This document shows positions 393 to 38,700 of a stretch of 64,000 nucleotides of DNA, one piece after another. Within the stretch, counting starts at the first letter, position 1; each line of letters begins with the position of its first letter. The stretch is from contig NC_083237.1 of assembly GCF_032191835.1 (NCBI RefSeq), positions 29,946,001-30,010,000 of the forward strand, in the 5' to 3' direction. Made by a program: the position numbers and the translations under genes. The stretch is from Heteronotia binoei. Lineage: Eukaryota. The notes beneath the pieces are model-generated. The model made no database searches and was not told the origin of the DNA. It saw only the letters and a list, made by a program, of their open reading frames with translations.

Positions 393-1399
393 AGGTGGAA
401 TAAAATCTCCTCATCAAGGATAAGGTGGCCGGTAAGATCAATGAATGGCAGCAAATTAGCACGTAAATGCAAGAGCTAACAAAGAAAGAGATGAGAGAAG
501 GAAGCTAGAGTCTTGGGACTGCAATGTTGCAGGCACTCTGATACTGTGCTTAGCCTCAGACTTGTGGGGGGGAGGGTTATGAGTGAGTCAGAGAGACAGC
601 GTAAAGTCCTTCACTTTCAGTACCTTTGGCTGAGGCCTTCTCTGGAGTACTTAGTCTAAGTTAACTCTTAACTCAGCCCTCTCTGAGACTCTTCTGTTCC
701 CATCAGGCTCCCAGACCTATGAAGAGATGAATGGAACCTTGAGCCCCACGCCCAGCAAAGGTTTCCATACAAGCAATGAAGAGGGTGAGTGCCAACACTC
801 CAGGGTTCTCTGGGCTGAAATACCACAGGTGATGCTTTCCCCATCCCTCTACTTGCACACTGCAGAAACCTATCCATACTACAACTCTGTCTGAAACAAA
901 GGAAAATTTTGCAGCTGATTGACACCTCCAACCATTCCCGGTCCTGGAAACTGGGTTGCCAGCTCTGAGTTGGGGAATTCCTGGAGATTTGGGGGTAGCA
1001 CCTGGGGAGAACAGAGCTTGGGGAAGGGAGGGAACTCAGCGGGGATGTGATGTCAGAGGCCACCTTCTGAAACCGACCTCTGTAGTCTGAAGATGAGCTA
1101 TGATTCCAAGAGAACTCCAGCCAGCACCTGGAGATTGGCAACACTACCTATAAAATATGTTTAAGGAGTTGGGATTGAGGGTTGGGTCCATCTCTGACCA
1201 AGTGCCTCCTGCAGATGCTGATTCCTACGAAAACATGGAGAGCCCCAACTCCTTCAGTTTACCAAAGGAAAGCAGCCTGGATTTACAAGGGGAAGGTAAG
1301 TGAGTAGGACCAAAGTTCTGGGACTGGAAGGAAGGGTGCTGACAAGATAAGAATGCAGTGTTGCAGGCACTTTGATATTGTGCTCCTTCTAATATCTCT

Positions 1400-3885: not shown

Positions 3886-4755
3886 TGAGACAGAGGCACC
3901 AAATTTGCAGCCTAGCATCCGATGCCTCTCCTCAAAACACCCTCCAAGTTTCAAAAAGATTGGACCGGGAGTCCAATTCTATGAGCCCCCAAAGAAGGTG
4001 CCTCTATCTTTCATTATTTCCAATGGAGGGAAGGCATTTAAAAGGTGTGTGGTCCCTTTAAATGTGATGGCCAGAACTCCCATTGAAGTTCAATTATGCA
4101 TGCCACAACGTTGCTCCTGCCTCCGCCCCCAATGTCTCCTGGTTCCACCCCCAAATATTTATTGAATTGGACCTGGCAACCCTAGTCATCCAGCAACTTT
4201 CCATGGCAGAAGGGAGACTTGACTTAATTTCTCCCATATTCTAGTCCGATACTAACACATTGAAATGACTGTAAACACCTGAGATGGTCTGGCAAGACTG
4301 CCCATTCCCAGCGGGAGACCTTCTCTTCAATGATGTGAATTGGGCCAGTTGCTATTCTAGCAGACGGCCGGGTCTCCCGGGGCAGGGGGCACGAATGCTA
4401 TTCGGTACGGGAGAAGAGAGGCAGGCAGCCCCGCCCACCCCGCAGTTTCCTGCAAGGAAACACACGAACTTCTTGGCGTCAGCAGAACAGCTGAAATCTT
4501 CCTTTACAAAAAGTAGTACGCTGAAGCGAAAACGCAGCGAGAAGGCAAGGGGGCTGCTCAGAGAAAGCAAACGAATGAAAATGAAATAACGGGCTGGAGG
4601 ATGCATGCAAACGTTTGGGTTTCACAGAACTTATCCTCGCCGCGTTCACTGTCGTATGAACTAGGGCCTTAGTGGAAGGTGCTGATCTCGGCCGAACTCG
4701 CACTCGGGGCTGCAGCAATTGGTTGATTTCCCGAAAGCATCCAGTGGTTTCTGTT

Positions 4756-4773
4756 AGGAAACGAAACTGAAAC
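4756..4773 (+). promoter_or_regulatory. ISRE/IRF-binding element upstream of the IgSF gene
   Basis: AGGAAACGAAACTGAAAC has three GAAA cores with 1- and 2-nt spacing and ends 18 nt before the ATG. An inverted CCAAT (ATTGG) lies near 4718, in CpG-rich sequence. Confidence 0.7.
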
Positions 4774-4791
4774 GGCACTGCCGCCGCCGCC

Positions 4792-7700
4792 ATGCGGGGA
4801 TCCCGTCGAACCTTCCCGTGTCTTCTGCTGCTCTTGCAGCAGTCTGCTTGTAAGTAGAGTAGAGGTTGCTTCCTGCCCTCCACACGGAGGGGAGCACGCA
4901 GCTTGCTCTGGCTAGTGGGAATCGAAGCGGGCTGCTGCCTGCCGCTGCAGTGGTTGGGCGCGCGAGTCAAAATATTTGGACAACCTGCGTACTCCCCCCA
5001 CCCTCGCGGGAGAAGAGGGATCTAAGGGGGCAGGCACAAGAGGGAAGGGCTGGAGACCGCAAGAAAAGCATTTGGTTGTATTTCTCCTGGGGGGTGAAGA
5101 GAAATTATTAGGCTTTAGCCAGTACTTCCAGTCTAAACTGTGGAGTCAAAATTCTACTTTGTGAGCTACTAGCATTAAAAGTTGTGAGCTCCTACATAAA
5201 TTAGTTTCCTCTGGGACCATTTTTCCTAAGGTTGCCAAGTCCAATTCAAGAAATATCTGGGGACTTTGGGGGTGGAGCCAGGACACATTGAAGTGGAGCG
5301 AAGATCAAGGCTATGACAAGCATAATTGAACGCCAAAGGCAGTTCTGGCCATCACATTTAAAGGGATGGCACACCTTTTCAATTCCTTCCTTCCATAGGA
5401 AATAATGGATAGAGGCACCTTCTTTTGGGGCTGACAGAATTGGACCCCCTGGTCCATTCTTTTTGAAACTTGGGGGGTATTTTGGGGAGAGGCACTAGAT
5501 GCTATACTGAAATTTTGGTGCCTCTACCCCAAAAAACACCCCCCCCCCGGATACCCACGGATCAATTCTCCATGATTTTCTATGGAAATAAATCTCCATA
5601 TGGAATAATAGAGTTCCCAGCAGACATTTCCCTCCCTCCCCCCCGCTTTCTGATGACCCTGAAGTGGGGGGAGGGCCTCCAAACCGGGGGATCCCCTGCC
5701 CCCACCTGGGGATTGGCAACCCTAATTTTTCCTGAGCGAAGGCAAAAACGGGTGAGCCGGGGCTAAAAAAACCTGTGAGCTAGCTCACACTAACTCAGCT
5801 TCGAGGAAACAGGGTCAGAGGAAAATGCTTCACTAAAGGGAGCTGACCTGTTGCAGTTGTTCATATCAGCAGGAGGCCAGAAGAGCTGCAACAGGCGCCT
5901 GTTTCTGTCACATAGACCTCATGAACGACCAGCTAAGTGTGGTTAGCTGGGGGTGCTGGACTTTTGCTCCCTCGGCTGTGGTCTTCATTTTACCCTGTCT
6001 GAGGGGGAGAAAGAGCATGGCGCCTGCCTTCAGTGGGGCACAGTGGATGGGTTGGGACAAGGTGAACAAGGGAGCCACATTTACCTGTGCTGCAGGCAGC
6101 CTGAGGTGTGTTTTGTATGGGATGTTTCCCCCTTGGAAATATATTTTTTTAAAAACAAGCCATGAACAGAAAGGGAGGGAGCCAGAGCCTTTAAGTTCCA
6201 CCGTAGCATTCGAAAGGCTTATTTAAACTGATTGCTGTAGGGAAAGGTTTTGTTGTTCAGTCACACAGTCGACTCAGACTCTTTGCAACCCCATGGACCA
6301 AGTTACGCCAGGCCCTCCTGTCTTCCGCCATCCTCAAATTCATGTTAGGTAGCTACATTGTATTAGAGCAGGGGTGGCCAAACTGGCTTCACATGAAAGC
6401 CACCTAGAATAGATGCCAGATGTTTGAGAGCTGTGGTGGAGGTGCTTGAAGGCCACCCCCACATGGACAGCTGGGCTTGGACTCAACCATTGGTGCCCTC
6501 ACTTCCCCCTGTGCAGGAGGAGCCAGTGAGCAAATCATATCACTGCTGGCTGGGGCTGAGCAAAGTGGTCCCTTGTAGCATTACTTGCATGTGGGACCAC
6601 CTGGTGTACCTTGTTCCTTGGCTATTTGCATAGCCTGCTCCTGCAGAACCCTTCTCTTTCTTTTTCAGGGGCAGTTCTGAGGGTGTCAGTGCCCTTGTCG
6701 CCAATCCGTGCCTTGCCGTCCTCTGATCAGCGGCTGCCGTGTAACTTCTCAGACCCTTTGAAGCCCATAAACCTGCGTAACTTGGCTGTAGTGTGGAAAA
6801 GAGGCACAGAGAAAATTGCTGAGTATTTAGGCCGCTTTGAGGCAATGAGGCAAGGGGCAGAGATGTCAGTGGAGCGGCTGCAAGTGGGTGATGCTTCTCT
6901 GCTGCTCCCACAATTACAGGATTCAGATTCTGGTGTCTATACCTGTGTTGTTATTTTCACACCTGATAAAGATGAGGGGAGATTTGAATTGAAGTTGGAA
7001 GGTAAGAGAAAAAATAGCTGAGGAGGCCAGTGTTCTCTAAGGAGCTCTTTCTCCCATACGATGCGTACCTCTCCAGACAATTAGATGTTTGGAAGAGGTG
7101 CTACCAGAGAATTAATTTGAGGAAGGTAATGGTAGCAGCTCTACAGAGCTAACTTCTCTGTGGCAGCTCTACAGATACAAAATGCCGACTGTCTGCTCCC
7201 CTAGGTTCCTCTGAAGTTGAGCAGGATTGAAAACATACGTGATAACTAAGGGCCCTCCTTTCTCCAGAGTAGCCCACCTTGTCCACTGCTAGGGGATATG
7301 GTAACTACATATCAAGTCAAACCCAGGACTGGTCAGCGTTACTGACTGTTTGTTCTAAATGGCAGCTTCCCAGAGTCCCTGACAAACAAGGATGTCTCCC
7401 AACTCCTGGACCCTCAAGGCTAATTCATGAGTTATGAAGGCCTTGTGTACCCTGTGTGGCTGGTCTCAGAGCATGTGGCCTAGGAGTTGGAATTTATTTC
7501 TCAGTGGTGCTCAGACCTGATTCAGATTGAGACCATAGAGGGAGGGGGTTTCAGCCTTCCATCCAGAGCTGTAGCCAGGATTTCATGTTTGGTGGGGCCC
7601 ACAGCACAATTCGTTGTTTGGGGGAGGCCAGGGGGGCACCCGGTTTGGTGGCCCTGGGTTCCCATCACTGTAAGCTGCCTTGTGTTCCACAAGCTAACCC

Positions 7701-10700
7701 CTCTTTGCCTGGGCAGTCACAGCAGCTCTGCTCCCCCCACCCTTTTCTTATGTGCCCCTCTCTCAGAGACAGAGACCTCTTGGCTCTCCCCCCCGCCCCC
7801 ACCCCACACACTGTGTTAGAGAAGGGGAGAGAGAAAAGCGAAAAGACCAGCAGCAATGATACTGCTTGTTCAGAGTGCCGGTGAGCAAAGGGGACAGATT
7901 GGGGGCCCTCCAATGGAGGGACCATATAGTTCAAAGGGGGGGGGGGGTTGAAAGGATGGGCCTGGCCCCACTGGGCCACACTGTAGCTACGGGTCTGATC
8001 CTGTGCCATTTTTGCAACCTAAAACTGTCCCAGGGAGCCACCATTTGCCTTGCTGAAGACACTTACATGGTAGTTTATCAGTATATGTGAGGCATCCCGA
8101 TGGGGCAAATAACCTGCCTCTAGGATCATACCAAGTTATGAAATGATGTGTGTGTGGGGGGGAAGGGGGGCAGATTTAAGCTACTTTAGTGGGAGGGAGG
8201 CTTTAGTCCTCTTTTCCTGGATCTCATGGTCCCAAGCTGATTCAGGCCCACTGTGTCTAGGGAATGAAATTCCAAGCATGCAACTCCAGATGCACATCCA
8301 ATCCACAAGACCTGGGGGGACACAAGGCCTTTATAATGCATGAAGCTGGCCCTGGGCACCTTTAAATGGTGATAGTGGTATGATGGATGGAGACCTTCTG
8401 TGCACAGAGCATATGCTTTGCCACTGAGCCATGGCACCTTCCAAGGGTGGAATTCTAGCAGGAGCTTCTTTACATATTAGGCCGTATCCTCCTGGAGCTT
8501 ACAAGGCTCTTTTTTGTAAGGTCCTGGAAGATTGGCTACATCAGGGGTGTGTGGTCTATTATGCAAAAGAGTTCCTGCTAGAATTCCACCCTGAAGGCAT
8601 CTTAAATTCCAGCAGGTCTTCGGTAGTGCCTGAAAGGTGCCTTTTTAACAACCCCTGTTCTTGGCGTTATTTATGATTGCCATTTCTAACATCCAGTGTC
8701 TTTTATTGACATTAAATATATATTCTATATGTTATGCATAGCTTGAAGCACTTTACTGAGGAGTGATGATGACTTTCATATTTAAAGGTTTTCACCAGTT
8801 TTGTAAGGTCCCCAAATTGCTGTGTAAACAAAGCTTGCTTAGAGTTAGAGCTTCCTTGCAAGCTTAGGGTAGAGATGAGAATGATGCCCATACTCCACAC
8901 AATATACTAGTTCTCATGGTTCTTCATTGCTGGAGGTGAAGTGAAGGAAGAGGCCCCTTTGGATATTTCTTGAGAGGATTAGAATTGGGCAGTCCAAAGG
9001 GAAATATGGTGGAATGAACTGTCCTGCTCACCTCCAAACTAAGCTGCAGTGATGGATCCAGACTGGAGATGTTACTGAACCGTGTAGCCTCAATCCTTCA
9101 ACTCAGCCCCTTCCCCATTGTCATTTCTGCTTTTCCTGGCTATTTTATTTGGATGCATTTGATGCATTGTCTATTCCCTGCAGTGACTGTTCCCCATCAT
9201 GTTTATGCATGTTACTGTTATTTTTGCATAATTTGCAGATACATATAATGGCTTAAAACTTTTGCAACACTGCCCCCCCACCAAGAAAAGGAAAATCTAG
9301 CAATGAAAATCATTAAAATGTAAAGGCTGACACCCACCAGTGAAAACCAAAAAGAGCATCTTTGACCGTTATGTGGTCGAAGGCTTTCACGGCCAGAGTT
9401 CATTAGTTGTAGATTTTCTGGGCTGTATGGTTGTGGTCTTGGCATTGTGAGACCTGACGTTTCACCAGCAACTGTGACTGGCATCCTCAGAGGTATAACC
9501 CAGAAAACTGGAGTTCTTTCTGGGTCCCAGAGACCTCCAGATTTCTGGGTTATATCTCCGAGGATGCCAGTCACAGTAGCTGGCGAAACATCAGGTCTCA
9601 TAATGCCAGGACCACGGCCATACAGCCTGGAAAAATCTACAACAACTAATCTTTGACCATTGCTACTCAGGAGAGAATGGGAAGGCTCTGGGGCTGAGAG
9701 AGGGCTTCAGGTGGGTCTCTGGTGGATGAGATCTTCTCCTAACTTTCCTCTCTGCCTCCAGCTGAGCCATGCATAGCACTTGGATCCACAAAGCTGCAGC
9801 TGGCCAGTCAAGGTGCTGTCACATGTACGATATCTGGTTTTTACCCTGGTGATATCTCTGTGGAATGGCTGAAAAATGGTGCGGTTATAAAAGGCCCCCA
9901 AACATCTGTTCACCAGGACAGTCAGAATGGCCTATACAATGCAAGCAGCATCTTGGAACTCACACCAGACATTGCTGATGCGAATGCCAACTTCTCCTGC
10001 CAGGTCAGACACCGATCGCTCGAAGGCCCACTCAAAGAAAACTTTCAACTGCAATTGCAAGGTAAGGGGGAGCCTTTCCAGAGGAACACTGAAGACCCGG
10101 CACTTTCCTTCCATCCATACTCCAAAAACTAGGAGCCTTGACTCACAACTGCTTATCCAACTATTACAATCTGTTCCTCAAAAGCATGAAAGTACCAGCT
10201 TAGCCCACACCTTTGCTCTTCCCAGCTAGGCTGCCACCCCATAAAAGAGGAAAATCATCAGAACTGCCTTGTAGGGTCACCCTGACATCTTCCCAGATCC
10301 TGGTCCTATGGCGTCTATATAGGTGGGGAGTAGTGTTATTGCTTCTCCTTAGGATGCACCTTAGAGGATCCCATCCTCCCATTCCTCTCCTGATGCATAA
10401 GAACATAAGAGAAGCCATGTTGGATCAGGCCAACGGCCCATCAAGTCCAACACTCTGTGTCACACAGTGGCAAAAAATGTTATATACACACATACACTGT
10501 GGCTAATAGCCACTGATGGACCTGTGCTCCATATTTTTATCTAAACCCCTCTTGAAGGTGGCTATACTTGATGCCTCTTGTAATGCTCTCTTAACAGGAA
10601 TTTAAAAGAAGAAGAAGGTGGTATTGGATTTATATCCCACTTTATACTCTGAATCTCAGTCTCACAGCAGTCACAAACTCCTTTACCCCCCCCCCAAAAA

Positions 10701-11670
10701 AAAACACCCTGTGAGGTAGGTGGGGCTGAGAGAACTCTTACAGCAGCTGCCCTTTCAAGGACAACTGAGATAGCTATGGCCAACCCAAGGCCATTCCAGC
10801 AGGTGCAAGTGGAGGAGTGGAGAATCCTGGTTGCTGTCATTAGATTTTCAGGGAACTTTTGTGGGATTTGTGCATCTCACTGTTCATTATCCAGGATCAT
10901 GTTCTCTTCTTACAGCTCTCCCAAGCCTTCAAGTCTTCACAGGGGTGTCACAGAACACTCTTGAGGTGCTGGAGTGCCTGGTGAGTGGATTTTACCCCCA
11001 CGATGTTCAAGTTCATTGGCTGCAAAATGGGGTGCCCCAACAGCAGGTAGAGTCTAGAGAACCCCAAACACTGCCTAATGGGACATTCCGCATGCGGAGC
11101 ATGATCCGGCCCGAAGAGGTGGACCCTGGAGTCAGCTACGTCTGCCAGGTGCAACACAATGCATGGGACAAGCCGCTGGAAATGAGAGCCCACTGGCAAC
11201 CGAAAGATGAAGTTGAAGGAGTTTCTTGCCCTACACCTCAGCACCCCCCGAGTTCAGGGACAGAAGGAACACCTCATTCATGCTCACCCACACCTGTCCC
11301 TACATCTCCAACTTCTGCTACAGGAACCGTTGTTTGGCCTTGGATAGTATTCACACTCGGATCGATGCTTTTCGTTGCAGGTGGAATAATGCTGTATATG
11401 GCTTTTAAGAAAGGTGAGTTGGTATTTCTGCAAGGGATTGGGATTGTGGGTTTGGGATAGTGAGGGTAGTGGTGGGCAGCAGAACTAGTGAATGGGCTGT
11501 GTGGATGTTGCAAATCACAGTGCTAACTTTCTCCCCCACCTCCCTTTGTAGGCAAGAATAAGTCGTATCCAGATACCAAAAGGAACAGCCACCTGGATCC
11601 TGAATCAGTACAATGCATGACGAAGCCAGAAAATGACTATATCCCTGACTATACAGGTACATCGATGTGA
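4792..11670 (+). CDS. Ig-superfamily type I membrane protein, SP-IgV-IgC1-IgC1-stalk-TM-cytoplasmic tail (NCR3LG1/B7-H6-, tapasin- or SIRP-like); 5 coding exons, ~435 aa
   Basis: Exons 4792-4849 (gccgccATG; MRGSRRTFPCLLLLLQQSAW signal peptide; donor gtaagt), 6669-7001 (V: LPCNFS..LAVVWKRG..GDASLLLPQLQDSDSGVYTCVVIFTP), 9762-10061 (C1: VTCTISGFYPGDISVEWLKNG..FSCQVRH), 10916-11413 (C1: LECLVSGFYPHDVQVHWLQNG..NGTF..YVCQVQH, plus stalk and TM), 11552-11670 (tail ending TGA). All introns are GT-AG and phase 1, and the joined frame is open (1308 nt). The 3' end is less certain because of a possible donor at 11657. Confidence 0.9.
5227..5724 (+). mobile_element. hAT-type MITE (TAGGGTTGCCA TIR) nested in another MITE in IgSF intron 1
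   Basis: Termini TAAGGTTGCCAA/TTGGCAACCCTA with perfect 8-bp TSD ATTTTTCC. It splits a host element (~5120-5810) whose intact sibling is at ~35000-35190. Confidence 0.8.
6240..6340 (-). mobile_element. BovB/RTE LINE 3' fragment
   Basis: GTTGTTCAGTCACACAGTCG..GACTCTTTGCAACCCCATGGACC..ACGCCAGGCCCTCCTGTCTTCC. Confidence 0.65.
9452..9494 (-). ncRNA. Minimal type I hammerhead ribozyme motif (near-intact)
   Basis: Minus strand reads ACCU-CUGAGGA-U-GCCAG(ucacaguug)CUGGU-GAAA-CGU-C-AGGU: 4-bp helix I, complete core, 5-bp helix II with G10.1-U11.1 wobble, palindromic ACGU helix III and a GUC cleavage triplet. Confidence 0.7.
9554..9596 (+). ncRNA. Degenerate hammerhead ribozyme motif (sense copy)
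   Basis: AUCU-CCGAGGA-U-GCCAG(ucacaguag)CUGGC-GAAA-CAU-C-AGGU: U4>C in the core and loss of the helix III palindrome. Confidence 0.55.
10395..10570 (-). mobile_element. CR1 LINE 3' fragment
   Basis: CATAAGAACATAAGAGAAGCCATGTTGGATCAGGCC... Related fragments at ~38760-39150 (-), ~57310-57510 (-), ~27815-27960 (+) and ~16740-16900 (+). Confidence 0.6.
10607..10830 (-). mobile_element. Squam3-type SINE (5'-truncated)
   Basis: Reverse complement of the 34460 and 50488 copies. Confidence 0.7.
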
Positions 11671-12206
11671 AGCCCTTTTGTGTTACCTCAGTAATTTGCT
11701 GAGACAGACTGCTTCACTGAATCAAGAGGGGTGCAGTTAACAGACTCTATGCATCTGTGGCTCCTTATTCAGCAAGCTGTTTTGGTGGCATGTGAAGTGC
11801 TGGAATTGGGTGGCTAGCTTCTGACATCCTGCAGTGATTGCAAATCTATTAGCCCTGGACAATTCAAAGGGCAGCTGTCTTTGGAGTTAAAGGTGTCCTT
11901 CTGTGACCCAAAGGAACTAGATTTGTTCCTAGCAGTACTCGATCGATGAGGGTAAATTTCATTTGTGTTTTGTTTTTATTTTAAAATATGCAATGGATAT
12001 TTTAATATTGGCCTTCTATATTTCAGAACTCAGTCTTGAAATTATCCTTTTTTTAAAAAAAGGGGGTTGCAGCAACAAGCTAAAGTAATCTCAATGCATT
12101 TTGAGACAATGTTAATTATAATCTTCTCAAGGGAAGTATATCAGGCTGTCCCCCCCTGCCCCCCCTAAAACCTCATCAAACTCCTAAGATTCCAGGAGAA
12201 ACTGTG

Positions 12207-12470
12207 GAGAGCCAGCTTGGGGTAGTGGTTAGGAGTGGAAGACTCTATTCTGGAGGGTTTGATTTCCCCCCTGTTCTTCTCCACATGAAAACAGCTGGAT
12301 GACCTTGGGTCAGTCACAGTTCTCAGAACTCTCTCAGCCCCACCTATCTCACAGGGTGGGGAGATGTCTGTTGTGGGGAGATGGAGGGAAGGCGATTGTA
12401 AGCTGCTCTGAGACTCCTTCGGGTAGTGAAGAATGGAGTATAACCCCCCCCCCCCAACTATTCATCTTCT
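12207..12470 (+). mobile_element. Squam3-type SINE (older subfamily)
   Basis: GAGAGCCAGCTTGGGGTAGTGGTTAGG head, CTCAGCCCCACCTATCTCACAGGG core, GGCGATTGTAAGCTGCTCTGAGAC tail. Confidence 0.7.
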
Positions 12471-13851
12471 GTTCAGAATAAAGTAAAACACCTCCATAAG
12501 GGGCCAGACTAGACCATATGTTTTCCCATGAATTGGGTCAGGGTTTTTAACAGTCTTCTAAATAGTCACATGGCAGTTGCTGGGAACACAGTGTGCTGGG
12601 ACTCAACCTGGAGAGGATTCAGGAACCCAGCTTGTGGGAAAATGTGTTGCTTGGACCTAGGAGATACCGGATTTTGAGTCTTCACAAGCAATTAGGAAAA
12701 GTTTGTTCAACCGTCCCTCCCACTACCTTCAGCTTTACTTAGCAGCAGAAGCAGAACCCTTTCTACTGTCCTGTGGTGAAGAAGAACCCAGTCATATGGA
12801 AGTGTTTAGCATGCACATCATATATGCCTCCCTCCCCGGTGTAAATGTCAGCTTTTGAAAAGTAGCCAAGACCCTCATTTTTATGAAGACTTTGGAGTCA
12901 ATGGACTTACAGCCCTGTACATACAATGTGCATCAAGCAAAATCATGCCACAAGTCCTGCCCCTTAACCTCTGCATATTTCTGCTCGTCATTGGCACAGA
13001 GACTTCTGCAGACTCCGTGGGCATAAGTTCTGTCAATCTGCAGCACTCCAGGCAGCATGGATGCTCGCACTGTGCAGTTTGTAGGCATACAGACTCTGCC
13101 AAAGTAGGACTGAACCTAGTTAAGTGGAAGGTGAGAGCCCCAGTCCAACTTGTGTCTCTTGTACCTGCAGACGTAGCAGATTCATAGGTTTTTAAAAAAC
13201 ATTTGCTGTTTCTACTCAGTGGATGTATTTTTATACATCCTACAGTGTGGTTTGTTTAAAGCATGGTCTCTTGTGTGCCTCACCATTGGTTCATCTGTTC
13301 TAGTTAACCTGCTCTCCTGCCTCCAAGCATAATCCCTGGAGTCTCCCAAGCTCCCTTGTATTGCCTGACTGCTGACAGAGCTTCAGTTTGTATACTGTCC
13401 GCTTGGGTTTCCGTAAATGGGAAGGAAATGGGCAAGGAAGCCTAAAGCAAGTCAAACCTTGGCTAAACAAGATCTGCTCTTCCTGTTTAGCTGCTTTCAT
13501 GCAGCAGGGTTATTGTGAACTCCTTTCAGCTGTTTGCAGTATTGTAACTGAAATGCCTTCTGTTGTGTATGTTGGTAATAAAATAATGTGATCAAGAACT
13601 TTTGTCTTAGAACCTCCCATTTGGAGAAGATGGAATTACACAGGCGGGGTGGGGGGGGGCAAAAGAGTGAAAGCAGAAGGAGGGAGGGGTTGTTGTGACA
13701 AAGCCCCCTGATGACTGAATGCAGGTGGAGTGGCTTGGATTTTCCTGTTGCTCTGGTCAGCCTCCTCTGGATGCAGGAGGCTGAGCAGAGCAGTGCTACT
13801 GAATAAAGGCTTTCTGCATTTGGATGGTCCAACAACCACAATCAGTACTAA

Positions 13852-25200: not shown

Positions 25201-28167
25201 GTACAACTAAAACAAATCATAGATAAATATAAAGAGTTGTTTGGAATTATTTCTTCTTGAGCTAAGTATTCAAGTACTGGAAACCATACTGCAACTACCT
25301 TTGCGTCATAATTTTTCGGAGACAAAATTAAATTTGAATAAGCCAATTTCAAAAGAATAAAGTAATCCCACAGTTTCCATAACCAAAGTGGTATAGAAGG
25401 TGGCTTTTTATCTAACCGTTTTGTTGCAATAATGTTTCTTGCAATTGATAGTAATATTGATATTAGTTCACCTTTTAGGATTAATATATTAAATAACTTG
25501 TATGTTTTTGAATAAATTATATGTAACAGTAAATACAGCTAACAAACCCCAGTAACAAGCATTGAACTGATTAGGTAACAGCTGTATATGAGGTTGCCCT
25601 GACCTGAATAGTTCAGGTTCCCCAGTGTCATCAGATCTTGGAAGACAATGAGCAGAGTTGGCCCCAGTCAGCATTTCAGTGGGAGAACACCAGGATAAAC
25701 CAGGTGTTCCTTCCAAGCTGTGTATGTGAGCACAGGAAGCTCATTAACCGGGAAGCCCCACTCAGCAGCAATCTGCCCACTGTTCATTTTAAGCCTGTGC
25801 CAGCAGTTGTATTCTGCTCAGGTTGTGAACTGCTCCACTCAGTAGGGGAAAAAATTTAGAGAGAACATTGGCTGCAGCCCCTTCTCCCTCAGAGAAACTT
25901 CTGGCACAGGTTTGCTGCAGTGCTTTACACACAGCTTCTGCAAAATTGTGAATGTTTGTACAAACCCATAGGGAAACTGGGAGGGTTGGGAGACATACTG
26001 ATCAGGATCTTCCTGATTGGCTAGGGTTGTTCTTTGGTGCTCTGCACTCTCAAACAATGTTCATACTTTCTTAGACTGACCGCCTTCAGCGAGTGGCTGA
26101 ACATATGGGACAGACGCTGAAGGTTCATCCAAGCAGAATACTCCTCCTGCTCCGGGACCGTGAACTTGCAGCTGATGCCACTCCCGGTGGGCTGGGCCTA
26201 GGGGTGGCTGATATTATTGGTAAGCTGTCAGTCTCCTTCCATCAGCCTTCTTGTTCCTCTGTCTTGATCTCCTGCTCCACTCCTGCCTTGCTCCTAAACT
26301 TCTAACACAGGCATGTCAAACATGTAGCCTGGGGGCTGAATGAGGCCCCCAAGCAACTGGCTGTGATTTGCTTCCTTCTCCCTCTCTCGTTTCCTTCTGC
26401 ATAACAGCTTGCTTTGCAAGGCTTGCTCAATCGCATAGGAGCTACAGAGCAAAACCTCTATTTTCTCCATTGGCTGAGGCTTCTCCCATGGGAAGGAAGG
26501 GGGGGAGGGACAGCTTGCTTTGCCAGGCTCTCTCAATTACATAGCAAAGCTACACTTCCAAGCCTCTTTTCCTTTTTTTGGCTGAGGCTCCTCCCCTTGT
26601 GGTCCCCTGGGGAAGGAAGGAAAGAGCCAGAGCTTCCTTTGCCCAGTTCCCTGGATCCCATGGGAGAGATACAAAGAAAGCATCTTTAAGACCAACAAGT
26701 GCTAATGTTTTAAGCATGTGTTATTTTAAGTTTAAACAAAATCTGTGTGTTCTTTATGAAGTTTATATTTCTGCTACCTAATCTTAAATAGGTACACACA
26801 GGTTCCAATGCTGATCCCAACATGGCCTGACCCAACAAGGTCTCATTTATGTCAGATCTGGCCCTCCTAACAAATGAGTTTGACACCCCTGTTCTAATGC
26901 TTCCTCGTGGCCATATTTTTCCCTCCAGATTGCGTAGTGGAGGCGACTAGCAAAGAGAGTGGTGAGGTGGGAAACTTGCAGCTGCATGTGCAAGGGAAGG
27001 ACAAGAGCTCCCACATGGACATCACAGTCCGCAGGGTAAGAGTATTACTCGGAGGGGGGATATTATTATTAGTAATAATAAAGATAAGCCAGTTTAGGGC
27101 GGGGGAAGGATACAAAGAAATTAACTTTTTTATCCAAAAAGTATTACAATAAAATTGTCAAGTCTAATCTCAGCAAAGTCAGTAGAGCAGCAAAACACCA
27201 GAGCAGAATCATTCATAGTAAAGGGGCTCTTCTCCTGTCTGTGTCGAACTGGGCCACCCACAGACAAGACCAGGGTGTCCGCATGTTTGGGAGTATCCCC
27301 TGATATGCAGGAAAATGTAACTTAATAAATTAACCTAAAGGAATCCCCTTCCCTCCCCCAAAAGCATCCTGATGAGGACTTGGAATATCCTTCAGGAAGC
27401 AATGAGGTGTTGGCAGCACCTGAGAGTCAGTTAAAAGAAAAAAAAATGGGAGATTGGCCTGCTGAAGGCCCTGAAGATTTGTAGAGTCCTGGAAGAGGAG
27501 ATCTTGGGGTGGAGAGGAGGACTTCCCAAATGATTTCCCACATCCTATGACTTCTCATAGGCCCCCAGCTTGTAATAATTCAATCTGAAAGCAGAGGGGG
27601 GAAGTCTTTGCCTGGCACCAAAACACTAGCAGCAGCCTCTGGAGATGCAGCAGTGAATTTGAGAAGGGCTTTTTTTCTAGGTCCCACCTGCTCTCCCTCC
27701 ATAGGTGATAGGACCAAGGGAAAGGCCTCTGATGCAGACTTAAGTGAAATGGGCAGGTTCTTGCAGAAGGAGGGCCTTCCAACTGAGGATATTCATTCTA
27801 ATCAGCTACCTAGGAAGGTGGTGGGCTGCCCCTCCCTGGCAGTCTTTAAGCAGCGGTTGGACAAACACCTGTCAGGGACGCTCAGTGCTGATCCTGCATT
27901 GAGAAGGGGGTTGAATTCGATGGCCTGTATGGCCCCTCTCAACTCTGATTCCTCTTATGGGTTAGAAAACATTGTAGCGCTTTCTCTCTCCGTCTTGTCT
28001 CTTGGCAGAATGAGCCGTTGCGGACACTGATGAATTGCTATCGTCAGGCCCAAGGACTTGGGAGGCGCAAACTGACCTTCTACTTTGATGGGCAGCGTTT
28101 GGAAGAAAGCTGGACCCCAGAAGACATGGGGATGGAGCGTGGCGACGTCATTGAAGTGTGGAGCTAG
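22205..28167 (+). CDS. NFATC2IP: NFATC2-interacting protein (NIP45; tandem SUMO-like domains), 8 coding exons, 312 aa
   Basis: Exons 22205-22219, 22311-22430, 23309-23454, 23546-23617, 24410-24584, 26075-26219, 26929-27035, 28009-28167 (939 nt, open frame). Motifs VPVYSNKV, LKIRCRADL, PSRILLLL..LGVADIIDCVV, LQLHVQGK, LTFYFDG..MERGDVIEVWS* match NIP45. It lies next to SPNS1 and LAT, as in mammals. Confidence 0.95.
25090..25580 (-). mobile_element. L1 LINE ORF2 3' fragment in NFATC2IP intron 5
   Basis: Reverse translation with one frameshift gives LLSIARNIIATK-(W)LDKKPPSIPLWLWKLW...VWFPVLEYL, the typical C-terminal pattern of non-mammalian L1 ORF2. Confidence 0.65.
26308..26891. mobile_element. 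hAT MITE (CAGGGGTGTCAAAC TIR family)
   Basis: CAGGCATGTCAAAC...GTTTGACACCCCTG. Flanks TTCTAACA and TTCTAATG are consistent with an ancestral TTCTAACG TSD decayed at its CpG on opposite strands. Confidence 0.7.
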
Positions 28168-35700: not shown

Positions 35701-38700
35701 GAGCCACCTCGTGGTGCTGTGGAGACGCACTCTGATGCTCCTCTGCAATATACTTCATGGATAACTGACCTAAGGGCCCTCAGCAGCAAGTGAGTGATGC
35801 AGGAGAGATGGAATCCTCTGCTACTACATCCGCAGGAGCTTTCTTTCCCTTCCCCTCTGTCCTCTTCTATAGCTTCCTATCCTTGGTCGTGTGTTCCCAG
35901 TGAGTATTTCAGACTTACAATCCTTGCTTCATCTTCCTTTTGTGTTCACTACGCTCTGCTTGTGAGCTCAGCACATGTGGCTTGAAAGTGAAGGAACAAC
36001 ACAAGCTCTGTAGGGAGGCTGAGCAAAGTTGGATAGGTGAGCCTCCAGGATGCTTTAAGATCGTGGCTTTCAGGTGTGTTCTAGGAGAGCCTTGGCGTTC
36101 TCCCTGGAGAAGACCAGCTTCCGAGGAAAATAGCTCTTCTGCTGCCAAAAAAGGGGTCCTGGGTATCCTGGGAGATATTTTTGATGTCAGGCTCATGAGG
36201 AGAATGTGAGCCACGGCTTCTGCCCCAGAATCCTTTGTGACAAGCCACTGTGGCTTGGCTGTCAAGTCAGTGGCAAAACCGTCTTCTGAAGATAAAAAGC
36301 TCCTTTTCACTACCAAGAAACTTTTGCCAGGAAAGACAGATCCCATGCGGACACAACTCACACATGATAGGGGCTTCTTTGGCGGGGGAGGGCGGGATAT
36401 AAGAATAAATTTATTATTATTATTATTATTATTATTGAAGAGGGAAAATGGGGTTCAATCAACTGGAATAGCTGATCTGATCCAACCCAGAAAGTTTCAT
36501 ACTATTACGTTAGGACTTGTGGTTAGACATCCTGGTAAATGTGCTAGAAGTCGAGTCCAGTTTGGTGTAGTGGTTAAGTGTGCGGACTCTTATCTGGGAG
36601 AACCAGGTTTGATTCCCCACTCCTCCACTTGCAGCTGCTGGCATGGCCTTGGGTCAGCCATAGCTCTCCTTGGAAGGGCAGCTGCTGGGAGAGCCCTCTC
36701 AACCCCACCCACCTCACAGGGTGTCTGTGGTGGGGGGAGAAGATATAGGAGATTGTAAGCCACTCTGAGTCTCTGATTCGGAGAGAAAGGTGGNNNNNNN
36801 NNNNNNNNNNNNNNNNNNNNNNNNNNNNNNNNNNNNNNNNNNNNNNNNNNNNNNNNNNNNNNNNNNNNNNNNNNNNNNNNNNNNNNNNNNNNNNNNNNNN
36901 NNNNNNNNNNNNNNNNNNNNNNNNNNNNNNNNNNNNNNNNNNNNNNNNNNNNNNNNNNNNNNNNNNNNNNNNNNNNNNNNNNNNNNNNNNNNNNNNNNNN
37001 NNNNNNNNNNNNNNNNNNNNNNNNNNNNNNNNNNNNNNNNNNNNNNNNNNNNNNNNNNNNNNNNNNNNNNNNNNNNNNNNGTGCCAGTGTGCAGGCTGTG
37101 GCACATCAGTTGCTCCCAGTGCCTTGGTACAGTTTGCTTGCAAGCAGTAAGTGGAGAGACAGGCAGGGATGCCAGAGCTGGGTATCCTGGCCCGTGGGTT
37201 CCATCCAGCCTGTGTGCCAAAACCTCCCGTTACCAGAGTCAACTCCTTTTGAGTATTAGCCATTTGTAGCTGAGGATATCTTGTCCTGGGATTGCAGTGC
37301 AGTTCTAAGCAATGGTCTGTATCTGCATTAAGACCATTTGATCCTTCAGCTCTTGAAGTCTGGCAAGTGTGAATGGGTGAACTGAGTTCCCTGAAAAGCT
37401 TTGGGCATGTATGAGTTCTGCCTGCGACAACTGTCCTGTCTGACTCACCTGCTCATCGTTGCTTGATGTCGCTGTCAAGGGGTGAGCTTGCCTGCTTGGT
37501 CCTGATCAGGCCAGCACGTGGATGAGAGCTCTCCCAGAAACCCCACATAGGGGCCACCTTGAGTTCCATGATGGGAAAGAGAGGCCAAATCTCAGTGCAA
37601 TGACTGTGCCCCTAAATTCTATTCTTAGAAGTTAGCTGCAGGCATCTTGTGGGGCCAAAGGGCATTCACTTGCCTTCCCTTTCTCGTCCACCAGCCGCAG
37701 CTTCGTGTTGTCGTCTCTGGGCTTCACGGCCGTGGCCTTTGTCACAGGTTCCCTTGCGCTGTGGGCCCCTGCGTTTCTGTACCGTTCGCGCCTGGCCAAT
37801 GGGAGCCTTCCGCCTTGCCCCTCAGAGGCGGCTTGCAGCACTTCAGACAGGTGAGTTATCAGGGTGGGGCGGGGAAGCCCCCTGACTGTGATGTGTTGCT
37901 CAGGTCCCCCTTGAAGAACTTCTGATTCAATGGTTATTGTCTACAACCTTCCTGAGCTGGTGTAGCTGGCTTTGCTACAAATGCCAAAGCTGCCTGTTTT
38001 GACTACAGTCCCTGGGAAGACGCTCTCTGCCTGGCCTCCCTGTCGTCAGTATAGGGGTAATAATGCTTGTTGGCAGGCAGGGTGTGTGTCAATTGCTCAG
38101 TATCTCCATTTTTGCAGCCTCATCTTTGGAATTATCACTTGCGTGACTGGCGTGCTGGGTGTCGGCAGCGGGGTGGAGATTTCCCGGCACCTGCAGCGTA
38201 GCAACCCTCGCGCCGATCCCCTGGTTTGTGCAGCTGGTCTGCTTGGCTCGGCCCCCTTCCTCTTCCTGGCTGTGGTGTGTGCTCAGGGGAGCATTATTGC
38301 CACTTATGTGAGTTTACCTTGCCCCTCGAGTTTCCCCACTCCCTGCAGAATAGCCCTTGGACCCCGAACATGGCTGGCATAATCTGTTTCTCCTCTTCAT
38401 GCCCGATAGGTTTTTATCTTCATTGGCGAGACCCTCCTTTCGCTCAATTGGGCCATTGTTGCCGACATCCTTCTGGTGAGAAACCGGAAAAAGGGAAGTG
38501 GGGGGGGGGGCGGGAACAAAGCTCTGTAGTTTGCTGCAGTCACAGTATTAAACCTATTCTCTTACCTCCTCTCCTCCATTCTCCTAAACATTTCAACCTT
38601 GCATTTTGGCACAAAAGTACACCCCCTACATGCCCTTAACAGCTGCAGAACATCCTTTTTCTTTTGTTAATGTTTTGTTAATGTTAATGCCAGATTTGAT

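Follow-up and report, generated by a model that had tools for sequence, protein, structure and literature searches.

What kind of protein does the immunoglobulin-type gene at positions 4792 to 11670 of this locus encode, and to which family does it belong? The window is the whole 64,000-nt stretch of Heteronotia binoei contig NC_083237.1 that we analyzed, and an initial sequence-only reading had placed in it an orphan V-C1-C1 gene with traits of B7-H6, the SIRPs, and tapasin. We confirmed that the gene is real, intact, and expressed, and that it encodes an immunoglobulin-type surface protein. Our preferred reading, to which we assign a probability of roughly 0.6, is that of an intact, transcribed, selectively maintained B7-family gene whose product is a 435-amino-acid (aa) type I membrane glycoprotein and a putative B7-H6-like cell-surface ligand.

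The open reading frame of 1308 nt (435 aa) extends from an ATG at 4792 to a TGA stop at 11668-11670 without an internal stop. It is divided among five exons, with canonical AG...GT borders throughout and phase 1 at every junction:

4792..4849, + strand: coding part of exon 1, with the start codon and a hydrophobic signal peptide, ending in phase 1
6669..7001, + strand: exon 2, a B7-type V-set domain without a J-like G-x-G motif
9762..10061, + strand: exon 3, the first C1-set domain (C1a)
10916..11413, + strand: exon 4, the second C1-set domain (C1b), a Pro/Ser/Thr/Cys-rich stalk, and the transmembrane (TM) helix
11552..11670, + strand: coding part of exon 5, a 39-aa cytoplasmic tail ending in T-S-M, then TGA
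11671..12323, + strand: 3' untranslated region, continuous with exon 5, in RNA contigs of X1 and X2

The conceptual protein is identical at every residue to an NCBI Heteronotia binoei model named “SHPS-1-like” (P0168). RNA contigs of X1 (a single contig of 2568 nt) and X2 carried the joints 7001>9762, 10061>10916, and 11413>11552, with exons 2-3, 3-4, and 4-5 thus exactly joined in two runs. Contigs of X1 and X2 also covered 11550-12323 without a joint; given that the RNA is unspliced over 11552-12323, the predicted stop is the real end of the coding sequence and no further coding exon follows. Extra cytoplasmic exons past a GT at 11657 were considered and are ruled out by the RNA unspliced to 12323. 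On the 5' side, the X1 contig covers all of exon 2 (6669-7001) together with 666 nt upstream of it, and X1 contains 57% of the words sampled from 4150-4849. Exon 1 is predicted, with support from this X1 5' sequence and the X1 words, from conservation of the exon and its GT donor in Paroedura and Python, and from the identical NCBI model. Almost no reads were seen in a further two Heteronotia binoei RNA runs. A tandem-repeat search of intron 3 found none, although the RNA shows back-joints, and an Rfam scan of 4000-12600 at the gathering threshold gave no matches.

Pfam identified a V-set domain in exon 2 (2.9e-7) and C1-set domains in exon 3 (5.7e-18) and exon 4 (5.7e-16), the latter followed by the stalk and TM segment. 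The AlphaFold model contains three confident Ig domains (pLDDT about 90 to 97) and a TM helix at residues 372 to 398. Together with the RNA, these results bear out the intact five-exon frame first read from the sequence (signal peptide, V, C1, C1, stalk, TM, and tail, the last being 39 aa) as well as its SIRP-type V-C1-C1 layout, and the motif quoted for the end of the V domain is present. When 17 orthologue models were scanned for motifs, the window protein and its orthologues from geckos, lizards, and Python showed neither an ITIM nor an ITSM; among the 17, the pattern was matched once, in the Vipera model, at the TM border. The TM segment of the window protein has no charged residue, and none of the 17 models has a basic TM residue. 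The scan agrees with the earlier statement that the ITIM of SIRP-alpha and the charged TM residue of SIRP-beta are both missing, and the 39-aa tail is, as also stated there, not the Gag-derived tail of human B7-H6. The tail evolves neutrally (dN/dS, 1.1), and a C-terminal [S/T]-x-[L/M/I] is found in 10 of the 17 models, several others ending without it. In a domain tree, the first C1 domains of every B7-H6-like clade formed one group with C1a, to the exclusion of C1b; C1b is therefore not a recent copy of C1a, which rules out an origin by recent tandem duplication.

Like B7 family members, the gecko protein is a type I membrane protein with an IgV and then an IgC domain, encoded by separate phase 1 exons, and its V and V-C sequences are also nearest to recognized B7 members, led by CD276 and B7-H6. 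In a V-domain search of solved structures, these two were the best relatives (4.8e-12 and 1.4e-10, respectively). A squamate and turtle V-C1a profile gave a full-length match to human B7-H6 of 115.7 bits; against CD276 the same profile scored 158 bits, spread across two V-C units, and among solved structures the best match for a single unit was human B7-H6. Although CD276 has the best V-domain E-value and its V-C units align over their full length, it is built as V-C or V-C-V-C rather than V-C1-C1, its per-unit score is below that of B7-H6, and its Foldseek identity is 16 to 17%. Foldseek identity to B7-H6 was 30 to 32%, with a TM-score by target of 0.66 (30% identity for the Swiss-Prot B7-H6). 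The initial description of a B7-H6-like V domain with an extra C1 domain thus holds for the V-C1 half of the protein. “B7-H6-like” here denotes profile and structural similarity only, as mammalian B7-H6 is absent from our tree.

Orthologues were found in geckos, skinks, iguanians, a monitor, and snakes, that is, in every major squamate lineage sampled. In the tree, which contains no mammalian B7-H6, CD276, or SIRP sequences and is rooted with tapasin sequences as the outgroup, squamates were monophyletic (96/93) and two turtle sequences joined them at 100/99. The V-C1 module appears to belong to a B7-H6 (NCR3LG1)-like branch, and the two turtle sequences are probably the closest outside relatives of the gene. 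The gene is therefore not an orphan, having orthologues in squamates and two turtles and an existing NCBI predicted protein. The wider B7-H6-like superfamily includes members in turtles, crocodilians, tuatara, amphibians, lungfish, bichirs, and a skate; deep nodes are supported at 68/79 and lower. Automatic names of the orthologues disagree (NCR3LG1-, SIRP-, CD276-, PD-L2-, and HLA-like), so that one gene carries at least six unrelated pipeline names. None of the publications searched describes this gene. The dN/dS ratio was 0.34 overall and 0.20 to 0.32 in the Ig domains, indicating that the Ig domains are under purifying selection.

Three neighboring genes were recognized in the window:

655..1300, + strand: last coding exons of a CD19-like gene, with YEEM and YENM tail motifs in the translations
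27949..28164, + strand: NFATC2IP exon with a Rad60 SUMO-like domain (Pfam Rad60-SLD, 1.3e-14)
37972..38382, + strand: SPNS1 exon, matching protein spinster homolog 1 among solved structures (1e-28)

CD19 is a B-cell co-receptor gene. The window order is CD19-like gene, V-C1-C1 gene, NFATC2IP, and SPNS1, and the first three follow one another in the same order in Paroedura, Python, and Pogona. The exons at 655..1300 are collinear with the 3' end of a 587-aa upstream gene in Paroedura, and a 564- to 587-aa gene lies upstream of the orthologue in three other squamates. The NFATC2IP exon is collinear with the downstream Rad60-SLD gene of Paroedura, Python, and Pogona, and one Crotalus tigris model fuses the V-C1-C1 gene to NFATC2IP. 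We conclude that squamates carry one copy of this gene, at a fixed position with a CD19-like gene on one side and NFATC2IP on the other. The exon matches sustain the linkage to NFATC2IP and SPNS1 claimed before; the gene had been said to head this cluster, and its position is more exactly between the CD19-like gene and NFATC2IP. The relatives in Chelonia, Polypterus, Hymenochirus, alligator, and Xenopus had no informative neighbor within 10 kb. We also considered whether the gene is the positional equivalent of CD19, which is ruled out by the CD19-like tail exons upstream in the same window. The tail motifs of CD19 are YEDM and YENM (PMC2228374).

Several other identities have to be weighed against the preferred one. 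The strongest is that the gene is the true squamate and turtle orthologue of mammalian NCR3LG1 (B7-H6) and the NKp30 ligand of these animals, the V-C1-C1 form being older and mammals having lost the membrane-proximal C1 domain while the gene neighborhood changed. We regard this as a serious contender, if on balance an unlikely one. Human B7-H6 is both the best single-unit profile match and the protein of highest identity in the structure search, and V-C1-C1 relatives in bichirs, lungfish, frogs, and a second turtle clade would suit an older three-domain form. Both the gecko protein and B7-H6 are type I membrane proteins in which a C1-set domain comes after a B7-type V domain, with one phase 1 exon per domain. 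However, a separate crocodilian, turtle, and tuatara “NCR3LG1-like” clade, distinct from the squamate clade (99/96), gave a profile that matches human B7-H6 equally well (111.3 bits), and the deep nodes are weakly supported in a tree without mammalian sequences. The gecko ectodomain has three domains (V-C1-C1), whereas that of B7-H6 has two (V-C1); the second C1 domain is accompanied by a Cys/Pro-rich stalk, and the tail is short where that of B7-H6 is long and Gag-like. The gecko gene adjoins CD19 and NFATC2IP, whereas human NCR3LG1 lies on 11p15.1, not 16p11.2.

Another candidate is a nectin-, CADM-, or PVR-like adhesion molecule that uses three Ig domains for cell-cell contact and anchors a C-terminal [S/T]-x-[L/M] on a PDZ scaffold, an identity that we consider improbable. 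Foldseek placed nectins, PVR, and CADMs just under the SIRPs for the whole molecule; they resemble the gecko protein in having three Ig domains and, after a TM segment, a short tail, and its hydrophobic C terminus, present in most orthologue models despite an otherwise neutral tail, recalls their PDZ ligands. Identity to these proteins is only 15 to 19%, however, and domains 2 and 3 are clearly C1-set, whereas the membrane-proximal domains of nectins and CADMs are C2/I-set (V-C2-C2). Sequence searches match the V domain to B7 members, and the C-terminal motif, missing from several models, is unlike the family-specific PDZ/4.1 motifs of nectins and CADMs.

Several of the automatic names imply a myeloid V-C1-C1 receptor of the SIRP family that binds CD47 and signals through ITIMs or DAP12, which we judge very improbable. 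The V-C1-C1-TM architecture is indeed that of SIRP-alpha, -beta, and -gamma; SIRPs superpose best on the whole ectodomain, with SIRP-gamma and SIRP-alpha as the top matches and nectin/PVR-type adhesion molecules next, and SIRP-alpha d2-d3 aligns to both C1 domains. Several of the pipeline names given to the orthologues stem from this resemblance. Unlike SIRP V domains, however, that of the gecko is not VJ-type: its G strand reads ...DEGRFELKLE, with no J-like G-x-G-T, and there is no SIRP among the best 60 V-domain matches in solved structures. The orthologues have neither ITIM/ITSM motifs nor a DAP12-type charged TM residue (save the Vipera pattern match), and identity to SIRPs is 19 to 24%, below that to B7-H6. 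The SIRP-alpha-type name given by NCBI is misleading.

A tapasin- or TAPBPR-like chaperone acting in MHC class I loading is close to refuted: the V-like and C1 Ig pair of tapasin is related to B7-H6-type V-C1 modules, tapasin could serve as the tree outgroup, and published clustering sets NCR3LG1 next to TAPBP and TAPBPL (PMC13262535), but the gecko V domain directly follows the signal peptide with no large tapasin N-terminal domain, the tail ends in T-S-M and not in a dilysine ER-retrieval motif, TAPBPR is not among the best 60 matches of the clade profile, and Heteronotia has a separate tapasin (P0274). The earlier suggestion of an MHC-pathway chaperone is thus without support, because the tapasin-type N-terminal domain is absent. 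Kinship with shark UrIg/UrIg2, raised by a C1 match to PDB 9dmx, is likewise ruled out by the B7-type V domain, that of UrIg being VJ-type (PMC12227049).

Returning to the B7-H6-like ligand, we propose that the protein would act as a cell-surface counter-receptor. Its two C1 domains and flexible stalk would hold the V domain far from the membrane, where it may bind a receptor of the IgV type carried by lymphocytes or NK-like cells. Such a role would parallel that of B7-H6, an NK-cell ligand that engages NKp30. With its uncharged TM helix and its short tail free of signaling motifs, the protein itself would probably not signal; PDZ scaffolds may hold it through the C-terminal [S/T]-x-[L/M]. A more far-reaching reading, which we offer tentatively and think rather doubtful, is that of an undescribed ancient B7 lineage: a V-C1-C1 ligand that would have stood beside CD19 since before the squamate-turtle split, would be absent from the same mammalian interval, would represent the ancestral three-domain form behind the two-domain mammalian B7-H6, and might bind an NKp30-like or other reptile lymphocyte receptor.

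To our knowledge, immune co-signaling molecules of reptiles are almost unstudied. One orthologue group, a fixed position at CD19/NFATC2IP, and a B7-H6-like V-C1 module with an extra C1 domain make this gene easier to study and offer comparative immunology a well-delimited ligand candidate whose receptor can be sought. The gene also bears on the evolution of the B7-H6/NKp30 axis and of the V-C1-C1 layout that it shares with SIRPs. Its practical value is modest, namely, a corrected name and a testable ectodomain-Fc reagent, with no new principle.

The sequence-only reading had further proposed that the gene may be interferon induced, for which there is one candidate regulatory element just upstream of the start codon:

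4757..4775, + strand: ISRE/IRF-like run of three GAAAC repeats, 17 to 35 nt 5' of the ATG

The GAAAC-repeat motif is the single feature that would point to interferon control. The window contains two copies of its core, GAAANNGAAAC, where 0.95 would be expected, and the motif is statistically unexceptional there. As much of the 5' region is transcribed, the motif may fall inside the 5' untranslated region. The tandem GAAAC repeats are kept in Paroedura and in part in Python.

The evidence shows that the V-C1-C1 gene of the window encodes a B7-H6-like surface protein. Sequence reading, scripted assembly, Pfam, and AlphaFold2 confirmed the five-exon V-C1-C1-TM open reading frame proposed by the sequence-only reading, which comprises 1308 nt and encodes 435 amino acids. 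Acceptors consist of a polypyrimidine tract followed by AG, donors are GT, and every junction is in phase 1. The gene and the features upstream of it are as follows:

655-800 and 1154-1300, +, 3'-terminal coding exons of a CD19-like gene (YxxM tail motifs YEEM and YENM)
4757-4775, +, triple GAAAC repeat, ISRE/IRF-like, 17-35 nt upstream of the ATG
4792-4849, +, exon 1 (sequence reading and scripted assembly)
6669-7001, +, exon 2, V-set domain (Pfam, 2.9e-7)
9762-10061, +, exon 3, first C1-set domain, C1a (Pfam, 5.7e-18)
10916-11413, +, exon 4, second C1-set domain, C1b, in the first half (Pfam, 5.7e-16), then stalk and TM segment
11552-11670, +, exon 5, 39-aa tail

The stalk in the second part of exon 4 is Pro/Ser/Thr rich and contains two cysteines. 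The AlphaFold2 model, built from a family alignment of 16 sequences, has three confident immunoglobulin domains (pLDDT, ~90-97) and a helix at 372-398 (mean pLDDT, 79).

Contigs from two RNA runs of one study (X1 and X2) contain roughly the exonic fraction of 9762-11670. Placed on 6600-12599, the X1 contig (2568 nt) and the X2 contigs cover exactly 6669-7001, 9762-10061, 10916-11413, and 11552-12323, with GT..AG joints, so that the predicted junctions between exons 2-3, 3-4, and 4-5 have transcript support. Because the contigs are unbroken from 11552 to 12323, we conclude that the transcript ends in a continuous 3' UTR and that splicing ignores the alternative donor at 11657. The 2568-nt contig extends another 666 nt 5' of exon 2, 57% of sampled words from 4150-4849 are present in X1, and exon 1 and its donor are kept in Paroedura and Python. 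One X2 contig omits 117 nt in frame (11205-11321, +; noncanonical ends AG..AC), removing the Cys/Pro-rich stalk. This may reflect a genuine isoform or allele lacking the stalk, since Paroedura isoform X2 and the models from Gekko and Sphaerodactylus also have none.

RNA depth was very high at 10396-10830 (intron 3), 8400-8599, and 12200-12399, where summed contig depth reached ~270,000 and raw reads numbered in the hundreds; these regions also showed loose ends and many joints going back about 66 nt. They look like an abundantly transcribed dispersed repeat that does not belong to the gene. TRF found no tandem array in its genomic copy, and an Rfam scan of 4000-12600 at the gathering threshold gave no match. 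Depth was also raised (~400) at 9400-9650.

The conceptual protein matches P0168, the Heteronotia binoei NCBI model, at all 435 residues, and the gene is thus already in the database under a SIRP-alpha-type name ([quoted passage not shown]). Nor is it the orphan first supposed: HMMER, run exhaustively with the V exon as query, together with word-filtered searches and cluster look-ups, recovered full-length V-C1-C1-TM orthologues from geckos (Paroedura, Gekko, Euleptes, and Sphaerodactylus), skinks (Tiliqua and Lerista), Hemicordylus, iguanians (Anolis, Pogona, Phrynocephalus, and Phrynosoma), Varanus, Podarcis, and snakes (Python, Crotalus, Vipera, and Ophiophagus). Names assigned to them by automatic annotation include NCR3LG1-like, SIRP-beta-1-like, SHPS-1-like, CD276-like, PD-L2-like, and HLA class II beta-like. 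Annotation artefacts in the public records include a read-through model joining the gene to NFATC2IP (P0208, Crotalus tigris) and orthologues labelled "HLA class II beta chain-like" (P0167, Gekko japonicus; P0210, Vipera latastei).

In a V-C1a maximum likelihood tree (75 rows, 211 columns, tapasin outgroup), squamates were monophyletic (support, 96/93) and formed a clade with two turtle sequences, from Gopherus agassizii and Chelonia mydas (100/99). A crocodilian/turtle/tuatara "NCR3LG1-like" expansion was separate (99/96). Further clades united other V-C1-C1 genes of turtles with lungfish and frog sequences, and contained bichir genes; deeper nodes lacked resolution. The "NCR3LG1-like" V-C1 genes occur by the dozen in crocodilians and turtles (P0226-P0270), and some in turtles (Mauremys and Chrysemys) lie on the same chromosome as V-C1-C1 genes. 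The expanded clade takes in the one tuatara sequence seen and zero squamate sequences. A single-C1-domain tree (100 columns only, weak support) grouped all first C1 domains and left C1b outside, which argues against C1b being a recent duplicate of C1a.

The V exon matched CD276 (4.8e-12) and B7-H6 (1.4e-10). The squamate-plus-turtle V-C1a profile scored 158 bits against 4Ig CD276, over two units, and 115.7 bits against human B7-H6 in a full-length alignment; the crocodilian "NCR3LG1-like" profile scored 111.3 bits against B7-H6, which was not among the best 60 matches of the third clade's profile. In structure comparison, the V-C1 half of the protein had its highest identity to B7-H6 (30-32%; TM-score by target, 0.66). 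A SIRP identity is suggested by the architecture and the database name, and SIRP-gamma and SIRP-alpha gave the best whole-ectodomain superposition (23-24% identity), followed by PVR and nectins. Its hallmarks fail, however: the protein has no J-like G-x-G motif, ITIM, ITSM, or charged TM residue (the missing ITIM and charged residue had already been noted), and no SIRP was among the best 60 V-exon matches.

The protein is best read as a cell-surface ligand from the B7-H6-like branch of the B7 family; its extra membrane-proximal C1 domain would serve as a spacer, and knowledge of the family suggests the ligand role, receptor, and immune context. The original interpretation is thus supported in part: its B7-H6-like protein with an extra C1 domain stands, and its chaperone idea does not. 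What is new is the variant architecture, together with a group of orthologues that had no name of its own in this known family, of moderate interest chiefly for comparative immunology and genome annotation.

The reported linkage to NFATC2IP-SPNS1 also holds. Two exons upstream of the gene encode ...GSQTYEEMNGTL... and ...ADADSYENMESP..., the second of which we take to resemble the human CD19 C terminus; squamates therefore carry a CD19-like gene directly upstream. On the downstream side are a Rad60-SLD exon of NFATC2IP and one from SPNS1 (1e-28). The orthologues of Paroedura, Python, and Pogona are each flanked by a Rad60-SLD gene and by a gene of 564-587 aa in which Pfam detects next to nothing. 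The exact order is therefore CD19-like, V-C1-C1 gene, NFATC2IP, SPNS1. CD19 and NFATC2IP are presumably direct neighbours at human 16p11.2, the same order as in squamates. The window and the Paroedura locus are collinear throughout. The CD19 tail motifs are YEDM and YENM (PMC2228374). A run of N at 36794-37080 in the SPNS1 region is an assembly gap or masked stretch.

The GAAAC triple repeat is kept in Paroedura and partly in Python. Interferon control through this candidate ISRE-like element is only a lead, because its core pattern is not over-represented (2 in the window versus 0.95 expected).

Exon structure is identical between Heteronotia and Paroedura, and the ectodomain is under purifying selection, whereas the tail is not (dN/dS: whole protein, 0.34; V domain, 0.29; C1a, 0.20; C1b, 0.32; tail, about 1.1). 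Despite this tail value, a C-terminal [S/T]-x-[L/M/I] pattern resembling a class I PDZ ligand is present in 10 of the 17 orthologue models.
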